DNA from: Paramicrosporidium saccamoebae KSL3
Taxonomy: Eukaryota > Fungi > Cryptomycota
Length of the DNA stretch: 12,077 bases
Direction: 5' to 3'
Assembly: GCA_002794465.1 (NCBI GenBank)
Contig: MTSL01000081.1
Span: 1 to 12,077 of the forward strand
Below, piece after piece: positions 168 through 6,875 of this stretch. The notes beneath the pieces are model-generated. The model searched no databases. It worked only from the letters and a program-made list of their open reading frames with translations, and was not told the origin of the DNA. Numbering within the stretch: position 1 is the first letter of the stretch; every line of letters starts with the position of its first letter. Both the position numbers and the translations under genes were made by a program.

Positions 168-1192
168 CTAGCTCCCACGCCTAATAACCTTGTTGATTTT
201 GCTCATTTCTTCTTGGAAAAGGTCTTCAAGCACTGCAATCTTTTTATCCTTTTCTGACGGTATACAATCCGGGTACTTTTTGCACAGATACTTTTTGACT
301 CTTTTTCTAAAGGTTACAAATTCCTCCCCATCTTCATTGTTGATATGATGTGATCGATACAAATTTGCCAGCTCGATCAGTTCTGCCTGTAGGGTAGTTA
401 CTTTCACTGGCTCGCCAGCTTCGACCATGGCCAAATCATTTGCCAATTTGAACATGCAAAACTCGTCAGACGGATCTTCCACCGTCACTTCCTTGACGTC
501 TTCATCGGCTATTGCGTCTTGCATAATGGCCCTGTATAACACTGAGCCCAGACCACGACGCTGGTGGGGAGGGACAATGAAGAATTGGCTGATTCGGAGG
601 CGCTTCTTGTCGGGGAACAAAAGGAATGGGTAAGCAGAGCAGAACCCTAGTATTCTGTCGTCCTCGTCAACAAGATAGTATAGGAGCCACTTGGGGTCTG
701 ATAAATCTATGATGGAGGCGCCATCGATAAAGAACAACAGCAACGCCTCCATCCGATTAGTGAGCTGTGTGGCATCACTTGGGGCACACTTGTAGAGACG
801 CAGAGTAGAGTTCTTGATGGGAGCCGCATTGGCGAGCAATCTCCCGCTTGAATTTAGCGCATTTTTATAATCCTCTTCTACAAAGTACACACTATCGAAG
901 ACACTAGCCAGGAGCCCAGAGGTGTACCTTGGGGAAACTTTTTTAGCACTGGACCCAGCGACCTTTTAAAGTCCTCAACCTCCGCATTGCTTGCGGTAGT
1001 GAAAAGCATCAACAGGGTCTTTGGGTCCACACGCACTCGAGTTTGCAAATTCTTCTCGCCCAGGTCCGATTCGGGATAGAATTGATGCAGGTACGAAGCT
1101 GGACATTCCGCGTCATCCCCGAATTGGAATGTAAAAGAACTACACTCATTCTCTGGGCTTGTTTTCTGTCTTTTGTTTGCTGGCTCTCCCAT
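168..1192 (-). CDS. HAT1: Histone acetyltransferase type B catalytic subunit, encoded in two overlapping frames (N-terminal part from 1192 to about 939; catalytic part from about 903/891 to 168)
   Basis: The C-terminal ORF has HAT1 motifs FFIDGASIIDLSDPKW, ISQFFIVPPHQRRGLGSVLY (GNAT acetyl-CoA motif A) and EVTVEDPSDEF. The upstream ORF (MGEPANKRQK...CPASYLHQFYPESD) resembles the HAT1 N-terminal domain. The start could be the ATG at 1192 or at 1207. The junction between the frames is inferred. Confidence 0.9.
892..938 (-). other. Putative short intron in HAT1 (GT at 938; AG at 904 or 892; 35 or 47 nt)
   Basis: A phase-2 donor (AA|GTTTCC) joined to either AG restores the frame (…LKN-VFDSVYF or …LKN-VYF). 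The donor is atypical and there is no clear branch point. Confidence 0.45.
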
Positions 1193-1338
1193 GGCAACTG
1201 GACACATATTCACAATACTAGGGTACTAACGCCTTATTGTCCATGTACCAGGAAGACTATTGGTCCATTAGGCAGACAACATGGCGCCTGGTTGGTCCAT
1301 TTGTATCTCTTCACAGGCCACGGTGTGCATAAGCCGAT

Positions 1339-1809
1339 ATGAAGCTCGCCCTCCTTCTTCTAGCTGCAGGCTGTTATGCCGCAACACCCGAGGACAATAT
1401 ATCTGAAAAATGCAAAGATGCCGTTGAGGCGCTCTCAGAGGACTCTGTGTATCACAGAATACACGAAAATTTGATTAGTGCCCAATACAAAGGGCGTGAG
1501 CACCAAGGCCTGGGCGCCTCTTACGGCATCATCGAGTCGTACACTAAGCTAATGCCTGAGCGCTTTGACGACGAAGAGACTGCTGCCGAGGCACTGCCTA
1601 TGTTCTACAATTGTCGCGACGATCATGTGGGGAAAGACGCCACGTTGAAAGAAAAAATCAAGAGGGACCTGTTTGGACAGATCCCCATGTTCAGTGACAA
1701 AGCATTCAAAGACGAGGTAATTAGAGAGTTTAACGACAAGGAAGGAGAGGCAGTAGAGTGGTACAAGGGTTTTGAAATTCCCACCGCTGATGTAGGCGAA
1801 GAATTATGA
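1339..1809 (+). CDS. Small predicted secreted protein, 156 aa, two Cys in the mature part; paralog of the next gene
   Basis: ATG start and a signal-peptide-like N-terminus (MKLALLLLAAGCYA). AATAAA overlaps the stop. The protein aligns co-linearly with 1894..2358. No known family recognised. Confidence 0.8.
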   Translation: MKLALLLLAAGCYAATPEDNISEKCKDAVEALSEDSVYHRIHENLISAQYKGREHQGLGASYGIIESYTKLMPERFDDEETAAEALPMFYNCRDDHVGKDATLKEKIKRDLFGQIPMFSDKAFKDEVIREFNDKEGEAVEWYKGFEIPTADVGEEL

Positions 1810-1893: not shown

Positions 1894-2358
1894 ATGCGTC
1901 TTTCACTTCTCATCCTACTACCGTTTGTCTACGGAGTGCACCATGACTCGGGCATCCCGGCATGCGAATCCGCATACCATGCCAGTCCCAGTCAGTACCG
2001 CCACTATCATGACTTTATGATTGACGCACAGCAGAACACTCTGGTACATAACGCCAGTAAATCGGCAGGATTCGTCGAGGCGTGGCAAGCCGTTGCTCCT
2101 GAAATGAGCACAGAGAAGCATCTGGCCGGCCTAAAGGTGCTCTATGCATGTCGGAGTATCTACAAGATTGGCGACCGTATCACCAATGCCAAGAACAAAG
2201 ACTATTGGCACATATTCGGAGAGATGCACCTCTTTACTAGTGAAAAGATTGTGGGAGATGTCAAGGAGGCACTAGGAAAGGAGACGGGCTCGCTGGATAT
2301 AAAGAGATGGTACGACAAGATTGTCAACAGAATTCGAGAGTTACATGGCAAGAAATAG
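1894..2358 (+). CDS. Small predicted secreted protein, 154 aa; paralog of 1339..1809
   Basis: The ATG at 1894 gives a signal peptide (MRLSLLILLPFVYG), so the GTG extension to 1819 is unlikely. Motifs shared with the upstream gene include YxxxHxxxIxAQ, YxCR, FGxxxxF and WY. Confidence 0.8.
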   Translation: MRLSLLILLPFVYGVHHDSGIPACESAYHASPSQYRHYHDFMIDAQQNTLVHNASKSAGFVEAWQAVAPEMSTEKHLAGLKVLYACRSIYKIGDRITNAKNKDYWHIFGEMHLFTSEKIVGDVKEALGKETGSLDIKRWYDKIVNRIRELHGKK

Positions 2359-2480: not shown

Positions 2481-2695
2481 GTTGCAACGAATAAAAGTAT
2501 TGCAAGTCATTACTTGCCGTCTATAAGGGAGTCACTACCAACGTGCCAGATCTAGTTTACCAACTGACAGCGAGTTTTATCGTTAGACATGCTGCTGCAA
2601 TGAATAAAAAGCTACTGTGAGCCAATATCTGCTGTCTATAGGGGGGCCACTATCAACATGCCAGATTGGAGTCACCAAACAACAGCGGATAATGG
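2481..2695 (+). repeat. Two degenerate tandem copies of an about 115-nt upstream module with a GTCTATA core (2519 and 2634)
   Basis: gttgcaacgaataaaag…gccgtctataagggagtcactaccaacgtgccagat aligns with gctgcaatgaataaaaag…gctgtctatagggggccactatcaacatgccagat. A homologous single copy lies at about 5290..5390. Confidence 0.75.
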
Positions 2696-2698
2696 CGC

Positions 2699-2821
2699 AT
2701 CCCAAGGCAACTTATCATTGACCACGTGGCCGAGCGGAAGATCCCGCGGTTTGGGTCTTCGATCGCACACCGGGTACCCCGGCCTTCACACGACGTTGGA
2801 GGGTCTTCTTCATTTCGTGAC
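2699..2821 (+). promoter_or_regulatory. Conserved proximal upstream region of protease A (CACGTG at 2723; near-palindrome CCGGGTACCCCGG at 2770)
   Basis: Aligns with 5476..5594 upstream of protease B. The conserved DNA falls in different reading frames relative to the two ORFs, so the conservation is non-coding. A regulatory role is inferred. Confidence 0.6.
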
Positions 2822-5194
2822 ATGTGCGTAAAAGTGATATTGTTCTTCTTTTTGGCACTTACCGCCGCCTCTGGATCACGAAATCATGTGGAGAATGCAG
2901 AAAACACGTCCGAGTCTACAACTGATAGACGGGTTAGATCTGTAACTTATAAACAAGTCCGGTCTACAACCGGTAGACGGGTTGAATCCACAGCAGTATC
3001 TATTAGATGGCCTCTTCCAGAGAATGAGCTCGTGTCTCCAGAAACCAGTGATAAGAGTGCGAGTTCACCACGTCCTAAGTATGTTGGGCGAGCCGTGGCC
3101 ACGAAACTGCCGACGATAACGGTCAAGAGAAGCGCGTTTCCAGTCGCGCCCCCTAAAATATCGTATTATGGCAGACATGAAACCAGTTATGGCGGACATG
3201 AAACGAGTTCTGTTGAACCCGAAGAAAAAATATTCATTGTCCTTACAAGCTTAGATGATGGAATGCCTACTCTGGAGAACAATTCGCACCAACCGAATAA
3301 TGATCCCAGGCCGTTCGAAGATAATGGTGGATGTGCAGGCGATCTTGTCGAGCCCAAAGATAAAGAACTCATCGATCCGATAAGCTCGGATGATGAGATG
3401 CCTAATGCAGAGAATAGTTCACATCAAACCGAGAGCGGCGAGCCTGTGAATTTCCCAACTCCCAACCTCGTGTATTTAATTATGGATCCGCTAACGGGAC
3501 CAAAAGTTGACAGACAGGTTACCGACAGTCTATCATTGGACGAGGAAGACTTGCAATCAACGCTGTTAGAAGATAACGGCGAGTCTGCAAGGTTGTTAAC
3601 TCCCAAAGACGCGCATCTAAACACGATTGTTACGGATCCGCCAACGGAACCAAAAGCTGACAGACAGGCCATCGATATTCTACCATTAGACTATGAAGAT
3701 TTGCAATCAGCGCCGCTAGTTGACAAGGATGAGTCTGTGAGTTTGCTAGCTTTCAAAGACGCGTATCTAGACACGGCTGTTACAGATTTGTCAACGGAAT
3801 CAAAAGCTGACAGACAGGCTATCGATATCCAACCATTGGACAATGAAGACTTGCAATCAACGCCGTCAGAAGGCAATGGTGAGTCTGCGAGGTTGTCAAC
3901 TTCCAACGACGTGTATCTAAACACGATTGTTACGGATCCGCCAACAGAACCAAAAGCTGACAGACAGGCCATCGATATTCTATTATTAGGCTATGAAGAC
4001 TTGCAATCAGCGCCGCTAGTTGAAAATCACGAGTCTGTGAGCTTGCTAGCTTTCAAAGACGTGTATCTAGACACGGCTGTTACAGATTTGTCAACGGAAC
4101 CAAAGGCTGACAGACAGGCTATCGATATTCTATCATTAGACTATGAAGACTGGCAATCAGCGCCGCTAGTTGACAATTACGAATCTGTGAGTTTGCCATC
4201 TCCCAACAACGCGTGTCTAGCTGCGCTTGTTACGGATTTGCCAATGGAACCAAAAGCTGACAGACAGGCCATCGATATTCTATCATTAGACTACGAAGAC
4301 TGGCAATCAGCGCCGCTATTTGACAATTATGAATCTGTGGGTTTGCCATCTTTCAACGACGCGTGTCTAGCTGCGCTTGTTACGGATTTGCCAATGGAAC
4401 CAAAAGTTGCCAGAAAGGTTGTCGACATTTCATCATTAGAAAATCAAGGTATGCAATCAACACCCGAAGCGTCTAGGTCCATTACGTTGGCTCTACCGAC
4501 TGATTTGGAAGGCAATGATCAGTTCACTTCTTCGGAACTAGATATTGCTGCTGCTAGCTTCTTATCCCAGCTGGGACAATCGTCGTCTAAAATAGACCTG
4601 CCTCGTCTTCCAGGCGAGAAGCCTTCTTCTCGTCGTGAAATTGATAGCATCCGATTCCGCAATCTGCTGTCCCCCCAATGTGTCAACGACCAGGTCGTCA
4701 GTGCCTACTTTAAGCAGCTGCCGCTCTTCAACAAGACCAAGTCTTCTTATGATATAGTGGATCCCCTTTTGAGTCAGAAAATGCCCGAATCATTCAAATT
4801 CGAGTGGGGAAAAATATACCTATGGCCACTGCATCATGTAGAAGAATTTCACTGGACTCTGCTAGTAGTGGATCTAAGCAATGTTCAAGAAGAGAAGATG
4901 GACTTGAAACACTATGATTCGTTGAAATCTGGAGTACGCCGATCTGGTGTTGATCTCGCATTCGGAATATTGAAGGAGAAAATTGGTATCGAAGACGAAT
5001 TCTTTACCTACAAAAAGATGCGTACACCTCAGCAAAAGAATGTGGTCGATTGTGGCATCTTTACTAGCATGATAGGCAAGCAGCTAGTCCTTGGGCTCCC
5101 TGCCAAAACTATCGCTTCGTGGAATAGCGATGACATGAGAAAGACTATGGCTGTAGAGCTGGTTACCACGAGAGTTCAACGTGGACCAAAATAA
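2822..5194 (+). CDS. Signal-peptide-bearing Ulp1/SENP-like C48 cysteine protease A (790 aa) with an acidic tandem-repeat region
   Basis: Signal peptide MCVKVILFFFLALTAASG. C48 motifs VNDQVVSAYF, FHWTLLVVD (His codon 4850), HYDSL (Asp 4916) and PQQKNVVDCGIF (Gln 5033, Cys 5051). AATAAA overlaps the stop. The ORF-track start at 2726 is a GTG placed before the signal peptide. Confidence 0.85.
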   Translation: MCVKVILFFFLALTAASGSRNHVENAENTSESTTDRRVRSVTYKQVRSTTGRRVESTAVSIRWPLPENELVSPETSDKSASSPRPKYVGRAVATKLPTITVKRSAFPVAPPKISYYGRHETSYGGHETSSVEPEEKIFIVLTSLDDGMPTLENNSHQPNNDPRPFEDNGGCAGDLVEPKDKELIDPISSDDEMPNAENSSHQTESGEPVNFPTPNLVYLIMDPLTGPKVDRQVTDSLSLDEEDLQSTLLEDNGESARLLTPKDAHLNTIVTDPPTEPKADRQAIDILPLDYEDLQSAPLVDKDESVSLLAFKDAYLDTAVTDLSTESKADRQAIDIQPLDNEDLQSTPSEGNGESARLSTSNDVYLNTIVTDPPTEPKADRQAIDILLLGYEDLQSAPLVENHESVSLLAFKDVYLDTAVTDLSTEPKADRQAIDILSLDYEDWQSAPLVDNYESVSLPSPNNACLAALVTDLPMEPKADRQAIDILSLDYEDWQSAPLFDNYESVGLPSFNDACLAALVTDLPMEPKVARKVVDISSLENQGMQSTPEASRSITLALPTDLEGNDQFTSSELDIAAASFLSQLGQSSSKIDLPRLPGEKPSSRREIDSIRFRNLLSPQCVNDQVVSAYFKQLPLFNKTKSSYDIVDPLLSQKMPESFKFEWGKIYLWPLHHVEEFHWTLLVVDLSNVQEEKMDLKHYDSLKSGVRRSGVDLAFGILKEKIGIEDEFFTYKKMRTPQQKNVVDCGIFTSMIGKQLVLGLPAKTIASWNSDDMRKTMAVELVTTRVQRGPK
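2912..2992 (+). repeat. Short in-frame internal duplication, 48-nt period (STTDRRV / STTGRRV)
   Basis: gagtctacaactgatagacgggtt at 2912 versus cggtctacaaccggtagacgggtt at 2960. Confidence 0.7.
3167..3208 (+). repeat. 21-nt tandem duplication (YGRHETS / YGGHETS)
   Basis: tatggcagacatgaaaccagt followed by tatggcggacatgaaacgagt; absent from paralog B. Confidence 0.85.
3482..4465 (+). repeat. Coding tandem array: six full 150-nt (50-aa) units plus a partial seventh
   Basis: Units start at 3482, 3632, 3782, 3932, 4082, 4232 and 4382. Approximate consensus: TDxxxEPKADRQAIDILxLDYEDxQSxPLxxxxESxxLxxxxDxxLxxxV. Confidence 0.95.
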
Positions 5195-5262
5195 AGGCTC
5201 TGTCAACATTAGCAACCTGCCTATTAATGTCCTTATCCATGCCATAGAAATCGACGTCCTTC

Positions 5263-5281
5263 AAAGTAGCCTTGCTATTTC
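5263..5281 (-). repeat. Right arm of the inverted repeat (imperfect similarity extends inward to about 5200)
   Basis: AAAGTAGCCTTGCTATTTC is the exact reverse complement of 2352..2370. Inner blocks CCATGCC and CTGCCTATWAATG also match. Confidence 0.9.
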
Positions 5282-5289
5282 ATTAAAGT

Positions 5290-5390
5290 TGTGAAAAGTT
5301 ACTGCAAATCAATATCCGCCGTCTATAGAGGGGCCGAACACTCTCAACGCACCAGATCGGGTCCATCGACCACTAGCGGATAATAGCTAC
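5290..5390 (+). repeat. Single copy of the GTCTATA upstream module, before protease B
   Basis: aaaagttactgcaaatcaatatccgccgtctatagaggggcc…caccagatc…gcggataat is homologous to 2481..2695. Confidence 0.75.
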
Positions 5391-5475
5391 TAATTAATAG
5401 ACTGTCTGAATGCAGAAATAAATACAAGGTGACTAACACTTATCGTACGGTGTGGGATTTAGCGAACAATGTCCT

Positions 5476-5594
5476 ATCCCAAGACAAATCATCACTGAAC
5501 ACGTGCCCATGCAGAGGATCCCGCGGCTTTGGGTCTTCGATCGAACGCCGGGTACCCCGGTCTCTACACGACGTCAAGTTTTTCGTTTTGTGAC
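5476..5594 (+). promoter_or_regulatory. Conserved proximal upstream region of protease B (CACGTG at 5500; CCGGGTACCCCGG at 5548)
   Basis: Homologous to 2699..2821. Confidence 0.6.
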
Positions 5595-6875
5595 ATGAGT
5601 GTAAAAGTGATACTGCTCTTTTTTTTGATATTTACCACCGCCTCTGGATCACGGAAGCATGTGAAGAATATAAGAAACACGCCCGAGTCTAAAACTACGG
5701 GATTATATGCTATGTGGGCTACTTTAGACGACAGCCTTGCGCCTTCAGAAGGCGACGGTGAGCCCATAAGTTTGCCATCGTTTAAAGATGTGTGCCGAGA
5801 TGCGGCTATGAAATTGCCGACGATGTCGACAAAGGGGAGCGTATACCCAGCCACGGCCCCTAAAATACCGAATAATGATAGATATACAAGCGTGCCTGTT
5901 AAACCCAAAGCCAAAGCAGTAATCGACCTTACAAGCTCAGATGATGAAAAACCTACTCCAAAGGACAGTTCGCGTCAAACAAGGAATAGCCCCACGTCGT
6001 TAAAAGACGATAGAGAGCCTGTAGGTTTACTATCTCTCAACGACATATACCTAGCTACGGTAGCAGAGCAAGTAGTTTCAAATACGACCCCTACTAGAGA
6101 GGTCATCGACATTTTATCATCAGATGATGAAGGTTCGCAATCAACGCCCAAAACGCCTGGGTCCATTACGTTGACTCTACCGGCTGATTTGGAAGGCAAT
6201 GGTCAGTTCGCTTTCTCGAAACTGACGATTGCTGCTGCTAACCTCTTATCCCAGCTGGAGCAATCGTCTTCTAAAATAGACCTGCCTCTTCTTCCAGGCG
6301 AGAAGCCTTCTTCTCGTCGTGAAATTGATAACATTGAGTTCCGCAATCTGTTGTCCCCCCAATGTGTCAACGACCAGGTCGTCAGCGCCTACTTTAAGCA
6401 GTTGCCGTTTTTCAACAAGACCAAGTCTTCTTATGCTATAGTGGATCCCCTTTTGAGTCAGAAAATGCCCGAATCATTCAAATTCGAGTGGGGAAAAATA
6501 TACCTATGGCCACTGCATCATGTAGAAGAATTTCACTGGACTCTGCTAGTAGTGGATCTAAGCAATGTTCAAGAAGAGAAGATGGACTTGAGACACTATG
6601 ATTCGTTGAAATCTGGGACACGTCGATCTGGTATTGATCCCGCATTCAACACGCTGAAGGAGAAACTTGGTTTCAAAGAGCAAACATTCACATACAAAAA
6701 GATGCAAACGCCTCAGCAAAAGAATGTGGTCGATTGTGGCATCTTTACTAGCATGATAGGCAAGCAGCTAGTCCTTGGGCTTCCTACCAAAACTATCGCT
6801 TCGTGGAATAGCGATGACATGAGAAATACTATGGCTGTAGAGCTGGTTACCATGAAGCTTTACGAGTACGAATAA
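5595..6875 (+). CDS. Signal-peptide-bearing Ulp1/SENP-like C48 cysteine protease B (426 aa), tandem paralog of A
   Basis: Signal peptide MSVKVILLFFLIFTTASG. His codon 6534, Asp 6600, Cys 6735. The catalytic domain is nearly identical to A. SIM-like motifs VIDLTSSDDE (5919) and VIDILSSDDE (6102). AATAAA overlaps the stop. Confidence 0.85.
   Translation: MSVKVILLFFLIFTTASGSRKHVKNIRNTPESKTTGLYAMWATLDDSLAPSEGDGEPISLPSFKDVCRDAAMKLPTMSTKGSVYPATAPKIPNNDRYTSVPVKPKAKAVIDLTSSDDEKPTPKDSSRQTRNSPTSLKDDREPVGLLSLNDIYLATVAEQVVSNTTPTREVIDILSSDDEGSQSTPKTPGSITLTLPADLEGNGQFAFSKLTIAAANLLSQLEQSSSKIDLPLLPGEKPSSRREIDNIEFRNLLSPQCVNDQVVSAYFKQLPFFNKTKSSYAIVDPLLSQKMPESFKFEWGKIYLWPLHHVEEFHWTLLVVDLSNVQEEKMDLRHYDSLKSGTRRSGIDPAFNTLKEKLGFKEQTFTYKKMQTPQQKNVVDCGIFTSMIGKQLVLGLPTKTIASWNSDDMRNTMAVELVTMKLYEYE

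Follow-up and report, generated by a model that had tools for sequence, protein, structure and literature searches.

Tandem SENP-like proteases with signal-peptide-like leaders in the intranuclear parasite Paramicrosporidium saccamoebae: candidate secreted SUMO isopeptidases

Paramicrosporidium saccamoebae, whose genome (MTSL00000000) was published in eLife in 2017, is an intranuclear parasite of the amoeba Saccamoeba and belongs to the Rozellomycota, sister to Microsporidia (PMC5701793). The stretch of DNA analysed here (12,077 nucleotides, hereafter the window) comes from contig MTSL01000081.1 (assembly GCA_002794465.1); its DNA is eukaryotic and compact, with few introns and a GC content of about 47%. 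Two adjacent open reading frames (ORFs) of the forward strand, designated A and B, encode proteins in which a signal-peptide-like N-terminal leader is followed by a linker with motifs of the SUMO-interacting type (SIMs; SUMO, small ubiquitin-like modifier) and by a protease domain of family C48, to which the Ulp1 and SENP enzymes belong. An initial annotation, made from the sequence alone, had proposed that a eukaryotic parasite exports such SUMO isopeptidases into its host, possibly into the host nucleus. The source of the contig, an organism described as an intranuclear parasite of amoebae, is in good agreement with that proposal.

ORF A (2822-5194, plus strand) codes for 790 amino acids, with the leader, a linker of SIM repeats and the C48 protease domain, and it equals the 790-aa NCBI model, leader included. 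ORF B (5595-6875, plus strand, with the stop codon ending at 6875) codes for 426 amino acids, with the leader, two SIMs and the C48 protease domain, and its NCBI model (387 aa) begins at Met41 and leaves the leader out. Both ORFs were found where the initial annotation had placed them, each of them starting at the first in-frame ATG past a stop codon, which is located at 2690 in the case of A and at 5496 in that of B (ATG at 5595). The DNA located 5' of both ATGs can be aligned between A and B at about 80-89% identity, with frame-breaking indels of 1 and 5 nt, which indicates that the DNA before the ATGs is non-coding and that the reading frame opens at the ATG. This conserved non-coding region (2690-2821, plus strand, upstream of A; counterpart at ~5470-5594 upstream of B) extends over about 130 nt and reaches 89% identity over 47 nt (repeat D8), a conservation exceeding that of the coding sequence next to it. 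A promoter or 5' untranslated region common to both genes, or a gene-conversion tract, could account for it. A CACGTG box and a palindrome-like GGGTACCCCGG element are found within the conserved region.

The leaders of A (MCVKVILFFFLALTAASGS; 2822-2878, plus strand) and B (MSVKVILLFFLIFTTASGS; 5595-5651, plus strand) display the tripartite n/h/c layout of signal peptides. Each contains one basic residue, an uncharged stretch of 15 residues and small residues at positions -3 and -1, and each constitutes the hydropathy maximum of its protein. An AlphaFold2 model of B, built from a 28-sequence alignment, places a helix at residues 2-16. In the same model the confidence (predicted local distance difference test, pLDDT) is about 90 over residues ~185-420 and lower than 50, a sign of disorder, over residues 21-177; the SIMs of B fall in the region with pLDDT <50.

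The first of the two motifs of B, VIDLTSSDDE (aa 109-118, 5919-5948, plus strand), combines a SIM core of the PIAS type with a tail of serine and acidic residues, and the second, VIDILSSDDE (aa 170-179, 6102-6131, plus strand), lies 10 aa ahead of the folded domain. The Ser-Ser-Asp-Asp-Glu tail of the former fits the CK2 consensus S-x-x-[DE]. These two stringent SIM-like sites compare with 0.12 expected from shuffled sequences (P = 0.008). In A, IFIVLTSLDD (aa 137, 3230-3259, plus strand) aligns with VIDLTSSDDE of B, and LIDPISSDDE (aa 183, 3368-3397, plus strand), a degenerate SIM-like motif with proline in its core, aligns with VIDILSSDDE. They are followed by seven tandem units of 50 aa (3491-4540, plus strand) with a period of 150 bp and a super-period of 300 bp; Tandem Repeats Finder delimits the array at 3493-4461, and it was also recovered as repeat family D1. 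The cores of the seven units are, in order, TDSL (aa 234), IDIL (aa 284), IDIQ (aa 334), IDIL (aa 384), IDIL (aa 434), IDIL (aa 484) and VVDIS (as VVDISS, aa 533), so that IDIL occurs exactly four times; an acidic tail is present on each of them and the repeat carries AIDIL-LDYED. Since the IDIL cores sit in a 150-bp tandem array, they go back to a single copied unit and do not count as independent occurrences, and since B holds two diverged copies of the 50-aa unit, the array of A is best explained as the expansion of an ancestral SIM-bearing module.

All the motifs named in the initial annotation were thus located, including the three degenerate ones (LIDPISSDDE, TDSL and IDIQ). The linkers had also been described as disordered and acidic. 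The disorder is borne out by the model of B, and the acidity holds for A, whose linker is strongly acidic (net charge -59), but not for B, whose linker is nearly neutral (-3). The PIAS SIM, whose core is VIDLT, has been described as one of the tightest SUMO binders, with a core optimised for high affinity (PMC3901395). SENPs ordinarily have SIM-bearing disordered extensions, and the multiple SIMs of Ulp2, SENP6 and SENP7 have been implicated in the recognition of poly-SUMO (PMC12687455). The association of SIMs with a C48 domain is therefore a normal design, and the secretion signal is the abnormal part; the architecture, which had been presented as unusual as a whole, is so with respect to the leader and the parasite context.

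The folded Ulp1/SENP-like domain lies at 4478-5176 in A and at 6162-6860 in B, both on the plus strand. Pfam Peptidase_C48 (PF02902; gathering cut-off 20.7 bits) matches A with 36.1 bits (E = 8e-9) and B with 40.8 bits (E = 3e-10), the match being confined to the C-terminal half of the model (positions 85-212 of a profile of 217). As the initial annotation had stated, His, Asp, Cys and the oxyanion Gln are intact in both proteins: H677 (4850-4852), D699 (4916-4918), Q738 (5033-5035) and C744 (5051-5053) in A, and H314 (6534-6536), D336 (6600-6602), Q375 (6717-6719) and C381 (6735-6737) in B. They follow the canonical order, with Gln six residues before Cys, and are aligned with the corresponding residues of SENP1, SENP2 and SENP5. 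Throughout the family alignment the catalytic His, the Trp next to it, the Cys and the Gly are invariant and the oxyanion Gln is nearly so; a few rows have Asn where the catalytic Asp is expected.

A Foldseek comparison of the B model with the PDB gave SUMO proteases as all of the top 26 matches (SENP2, Ulp1, SENP1, SENP3, SENP5, Ulp2 and SENP7), the best of them being SENP2, Ulp1, SENP1, SENP5 and SENP3, with E values from 3e-10 to 3e-9 and template modelling (TM) scores of 0.65-0.72. OtDUB, the NEDD8-specific SENP8 and XopD rank below the SUMO proteases. Likewise, a profile of 13 family members matches SENP1 (3e-23), SENP2 (8e-22) and SENP5 (3e-18), followed by NopD and SENP8 (about 1e-11), Ulp1 (9e-11), XopD (2e-8), Ulp2 (3e-8) and SENP7 (5e-4); its top 14 matches are SUMO proteases throughout, and SENP8 is weaker by 11-12 orders of magnitude. 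The catalytic domain is therefore closest to the SUMO-specific SENP1, SENP2 and Ulp1. Membership of A and B in the SENP6/7 class was considered and ruled out by the same profile, whose match to SENP1 (3e-23) is far better than those to Ulp2 (3e-8) and SENP7 (5e-4).

The domain of B was searched exhaustively with phmmer against 1.84 billion cluster representatives, which returned 40 proteins at E < 1e-3 and five at E < 1e-10. Word-indexed homologue searches, carried out with the catalytic region of B and with the family profile, found nothing beyond the query or an already-known protein. The nearest relatives are uncultured and come from Logan, JGI or ENA assemblies, and nearly all of them have a hydrophobic leader at the start and SIM-like motifs. 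Literature searches with the SRA and JGI sample accessions of their contigs found no publication. The orthologous locus has the layout HAT1 ... GT22-PRP3-PTPA. In loci L002 and L003, HAT1 is followed by a small leader-bearing protein, a pair of C48 genes with a degenerate paralogue as the third, and then GT22, PRP3 and PTPA; L004 has one C48 gene followed by GT22, PRP3 and PTPA; L005 has one C48 gene adjoining GT22; L007 has HAT1, the small leader-bearing protein and two C48 genes; and L009 has one C48 gene followed by PRP3 and PTPA. This conserved synteny implies that the C48 loci are orthologous and that they come from related organisms. Between the window and L002 the C48 domain is 27-33% identical and the housekeeping neighbours are 46-54% identical; judging by these values, the catalytic domain is evolving faster than its housekeeping neighbours.

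In a maximum-likelihood tree of the catalytic domain, all 12 leader-bearing syntenic proteins and one truncated fragment form a clade with support 95/96, and the leaderless Ulp1-like matches fall outside it. The truncated fragment is the sole member of the clade without a leader. The n/h/c layout and the -3/-1 rule are satisfied, according to a heuristic test, in the 12 complete members of the clade (A and B included), which extends beyond P. saccamoebae to at least six other organisms. The leader has been kept even though the identity of the catalytic domain among clade members is only 25-33%. The combination of leader, SIMs and C48 domain thus goes well beyond one gene model, and the leader claimed for both ORFs finds support, by these heuristics, in all the complete relatives.

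The linkers cannot be aligned between lineages; the motifs recur nevertheless. [VI]IDLT is present in five of 13 leader-bearing proteins, compared with 0.015 expected from shuffles, which never gave more than one, and the looser pattern [VI][VI]D[LI][TSLME] in nine of 13, compared with 0.31 expected. Just one other C48 match contains the looser pattern (11,285 residues scanned). Equivalent cores with acidic runs are found in other members, such as KIIIIDSDSDE, PIIIEDDDE, ISLVDDDDDVII, DIVIVLGEES, DDLIVLPDS and EVINLVDNDD.

The thirteenth leader-bearing protein, P0039 (L006:78-953), lies outside the Paramicrosporidium clade in the tree. Encoded on a 1-kb metagenome contig of the ENA, it combines a canonical Ulp1 domain (Pfam E = 4e-31) with a leader, a cluster of basic residues (KKRK) and NVIDLMSSDEED. 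The architecture of leader, SIMs and C48 domain may have arisen more than once, P0039 being a convergent case in another organism.

The tandem C48 pairs of the window, L003 and L007 are in each case sisters in the tree, which implies repeated duplication or gene conversion. The domains of A and B are 86% identical, with a synonymous divergence (dS) of 0.14 and a dN/dS ratio of 0.54. The initial annotation had seen in the pair a system: the two adjacent C48 genes are there, but they are recent duplicates or gene-converted copies and not two different components. Synteny and tree together suggest that the leader-bearing C48 gene is an old, syntenically fixed and repeatedly duplicated feature of this parasite clade.

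Besides B (window 5595-5714, start called at Met41), two other public gene models have mis-called starts: gene 1 of L003 (P0041; L003:1326-1364), which begins at an internal Met, and gene 1 of L007 (P0047; L007:4435-4647), which is over-extended upstream. In the last two genes a Met followed by the leader is present in frame. Mis-calls in three genes amount to a systematic annotation error that masks the leader.

The reading that we favour, with a probability of about 0.58, is that A and B, as paralogues arranged in tandem and belonging to a lineage-specific Ulp1/SENP branch, are secreted, dock by means of their SIMs and strip SUMO from host nuclear proteins. First, a cleavable N-terminal signal peptide, as suggested by the sequence and its conservation, would route both proteins through the secretory pathway of the parasite to the outside. 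According to the published biology of the organism, growth takes place inside the host nucleus, and secretion would then deliver the enzymes directly to concentrated host SUMO conjugates. There, the PIAS-type SIMs of the disordered linker, given the identity and conservation of the motifs, would dock onto SUMO, two of them in B and about nine SIM-like units in A, the latter favouring multiply or poly-SUMOylated targets by avidity. Finally, the SENP1/2-like domain, whose fold and residues are known from prediction and alignment, would cleave SUMO off host proteins, its activity and its specificity among ubiquitin-like proteins being putative. This reading is supported in the sense that it agrees with every computational test that was run, one of which put it at real risk.

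Several points weigh against it. The leader was called by heuristics and conservation; the model deposited for B has its start at Met41 and is leaderless; the published RNA of P. saccamoebae derives from spores only; the family does not have the segment of about 14 aa that bears the second Gly-Gly-clamping Trp in SENP1; and the leader of B is followed by a basic sequence, RKHVKNIR, with more positive charge than there is on the N-terminal side. By the positive-inside rule, this last feature could speak for an anchor that is not cleaved and has the reverse topology. In that case A and B would be Ulp1/Ulp2-type proteases serving the parasite itself: anchored in its endoplasmic reticulum or nuclear envelope, they would expose the catalytic domain to the parasite cytosol or nucleoplasm and act on the parasite's SUMO conjugates. 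The uncharged stretches of 21-25 residues in P0002, P0006 and P0011 go in the same direction, and SIM-bearing disordered extensions are standard in housekeeping SENP and Ulp2 enzymes (PMC12687455). Nevertheless, in all the members with a leader the strongly hydrophobic core comprises merely 8-13 residues and is followed by the classic small residues at -3 and -1 (WAS|K, WAG|R, WAS|Q, CGA|S, ASG|S), as is typical of signal peptides that are cleaved; the flank after the core is acidic or neutral in P0046, P0039 and P0006, as in the normal N-in orientation; the domain outpaces its housekeeping neighbours in evolution; and two other leader-bearing families, the small helical one and the catalytically dead paralogue, share the locus. 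Taken together, we regard the anchored housekeeping enzymes as unlikely.

A second explanation accepts that A and B are secreted, or packed into spores, and denies that they are specific for SUMO: they would remove ubiquitin or NEDD8 from host proteins, an activity found in several bacterial enzymes of the CE clan, or would carry out Gly-Gly-directed processing of secreted or spore proteins as viral proteases of the CE clan do. This fold does include the NEDD8-specific SENP8 and bacterial enzymes of mixed specificity, lower in the fold and profile lists, and one relative has a weak match of the YopJ type in the precomputed Pfam annotation. The loss of the SENP1 segment with one of the di-Gly-clamping Trp residues is also relevant here; the Trp of the family's WPLxH motif, which precedes the catalytic His by eight or nine residues, is invariant and may replace the missing one. 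The unbroken runs of SUMO proteases at the head of both lists, with SENP8 far behind, argue for SUMO instead, and the conserved [VI]IDLT with its serine and acidic residues is a ligand of the SUMO groove for which no ubiquitin or NEDD8 counterpart is known. It seems improbable, then, that another modifier or a processing function is the target. Finally, that the leader is an annotation artefact and the true start lies elsewhere (at Met41 of B or in an upstream exon), as would befit ordinary nuclear Ulp1-like enzymes, draws on the NCBI model of B and on the short introns of this genome, where the neighbouring HAT1 gene is split over two frames, and is very hard to believe, as the leader follows the first in-frame ATG of both genes, is included in the deposited model of A, has been kept in both paralogues despite the frame-breaking indels upstream, and has an equivalent in every complete member of the clade, in at least six other organisms, at the low catalytic-domain identity given above.

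The secreted, SIM-docked proteases proposed here can be compared with several known systems. With Ulp1, SENP1 and SENP2 the family has in common the catalytic fold, the His-Asp-Cys triad with the oxyanion Gln, a disordered N-terminal extension and the motifs LND..I..Y, HW, YDS and PQQ.N..DCG. Those enzymes are nuclear or pore-associated and do not have a signal peptide, whereas the A/B family has a leader of the Sec type; with respect to SENP1, moreover, the 'RW' Trp segment of about 14 aa is absent and the WPLxH Trp is invariant. Ulp2, SENP6 and SENP7 have multiple SIMs in long disordered extensions (PMC12687455), and the array of A could give a similar avidity, so A and B may resemble these enzymes in their working mode, although they are outside that branch: their catalytic domain does not belong to the SENP6/7 type, the known enzymes are leaderless, and the SIM-like units of A are 50 aa apart in a recent tandem repeat. 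The same spacing distinguishes A from RNF4, in which the SIMs are tightly clustered. The VIDLT core of the PIAS SIM (PMC3901395) recurs unchanged in VIDLTSSDDE of B, where the putative SIM is part of a protease and not, like the known motif, of a ligase.

The bacterial effectors of the CE clan (XopD, NopD, SnCE1) share with A and B the Ulp1 fold and the concept of an intracellular parasite or symbiont that delivers an enzyme removing host SUMO. Their delivery is by type III or IV secretion, in contrast to the eukaryotic Sec leader of A and B, and their similarity to A and B in sequence and fold is far weaker than that of the eukaryotic SENPs. A and B are eukaryotic genes located amid HAT1, GT22 and PRP3, syntenic in relatives and vertically inherited. 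A horizontal transfer from amoeba-associated bacteria was considered and ruled out: the similarity to SENP1/2 is at least 12 orders of magnitude above that to any bacterial CE enzyme, and the synteny extends across relatives.

Two other families with leaders are found at the locus. The first one is represented in the window by a protein of 156 aa (1339-1809, plus strand), with an all-helical AlphaFold2 model (pLDDT 80), and by a copy of it of 154 aa (1894-2358, plus strand); homologues lie at L003:116-586, L007:3612-4142 and L005:6179-6700 (minus strand). The family (154-176 aa) immediately precedes the C48 genes, with which it is co-inherited, both in the window and in three lineages related to it, and it is characterised by two invariant Cys residues and the motifs LY.CR..YP and P.FSD..F. 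It matched no Pfam family and had no significant fold match in the PDB. These small proteins may be functional partners of the proteases.

The second family is the third leader-bearing paralogue, located between the active C48 genes and GT22 at L003:4437-5633 (= L002:11900-12892) and possibly at L004:11907-13526. It has lost the catalytic His (YWTLL for HWTLL) and the Cys, and the family hidden Markov model recognises it with E = 2e-7 in L003 and just 0.14 for the L004 protein. No such paralogue is present in the window, where B abuts GT22. From its sequence, it could be a pseudo-protease or a SUMO-binding decoy. The small helical family and the dead C48 paralogue point to a cluster of secreted proteins at this locus.

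The remaining neighbours of the C48 genes in the window are housekeeping genes: a HAT1-like GNAT, an Alg9-like mannosyltransferase of family GT22, PRP3 and an alpha/beta-hydrolase-like protein. The GT22 gene (6885-8414) directly abuts ORF B. The HAT1-like gene (168-1213, minus strand) appears as two overlapping ORFs in different frames; its NCBI model, 324 aa across 1025 nt, is compatible with a single intron as short as about 50 nt, from which it follows that short introns exist in the P. saccamoebae genome. The hydrolase-like protein (593 aa; 10111-11892, minus strand) matches Peptidase_S9 below threshold (17.5 bits against a cut-off of 22.6), and its hydrophobic C-terminal segment, LLAAGFGIFALIAAVIIIW, looks like a membrane anchor. 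Immediately upstream of the two minus-strand genes, PRP3 and the hydrolase-like gene, there is an intergenic repeat of 69 nt whose copies (9852-9920 and 11994-12062) are 94% identical. It holds a tandem 29-nt unit (GTATTTGACGTAGAGG..TGATTAGTTG), the inner unit being found also at 9837-9893, and it may act as a promoter element. At 11932-11990, next to the repeat, there is a perfect (AGAGGC)n microsatellite with 9.8 copies.

The genome paper and its supplements make no mention of secretion, SUMO, Ulp1 or C48 (PMC5701793), and a review of fungal secretomes lists P. saccamoebae and does not list C48. Literature searches for a secreted eukaryotic SUMO protease, a microsporidian Ulp1 with a signal peptide or work on SUMO in Paramicrosporidium found none, in line with the statement of the initial annotation that leader, multiple SIMs and C48 domain are not known together from described eukaryotic proteins. 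To our knowledge, no secreted SUMO protease from a eukaryotic parasite has been described. Delivered SUMO proteases are already known from bacteria (XopD, NopD, SnCE1); what appears to be new is a eukaryotic, Sec-routed and SIM-armed version in a parasite clade. A broader interpretation, for which we consider the chances to be even, is that this is the first Sec-secreted family of eukaryotic SUMO isopeptidase effectors, by which the Paramicrosporidium lineage would have adapted, long ago, to living in the host nucleus or close to it. Host SUMO would then be reached by secretion alone, the number of SIMs would be tuned by repeat expansion and recurrent duplication, and the enzymes would travel with a small helical family and a dead C48 paralogue, the latter possibly a SUMO-binding decoy.

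SUMO is a central nuclear regulator of chromatin, DNA repair and stress responses, and it is attacked by bacteria and viruses. With two SIM-like units in B and about nine in A, the family represents a natural experiment on how the number and spacing of SIMs tune a SUMO protease. If the proposed reading is true, a SENP-like enzyme released by an intranuclear parasite would be a very direct route to the reprogramming of the host nucleus, and A and B would be the first concrete effector candidates for Rozellomycota, a group in which the mechanisms of host manipulation are almost unknown.

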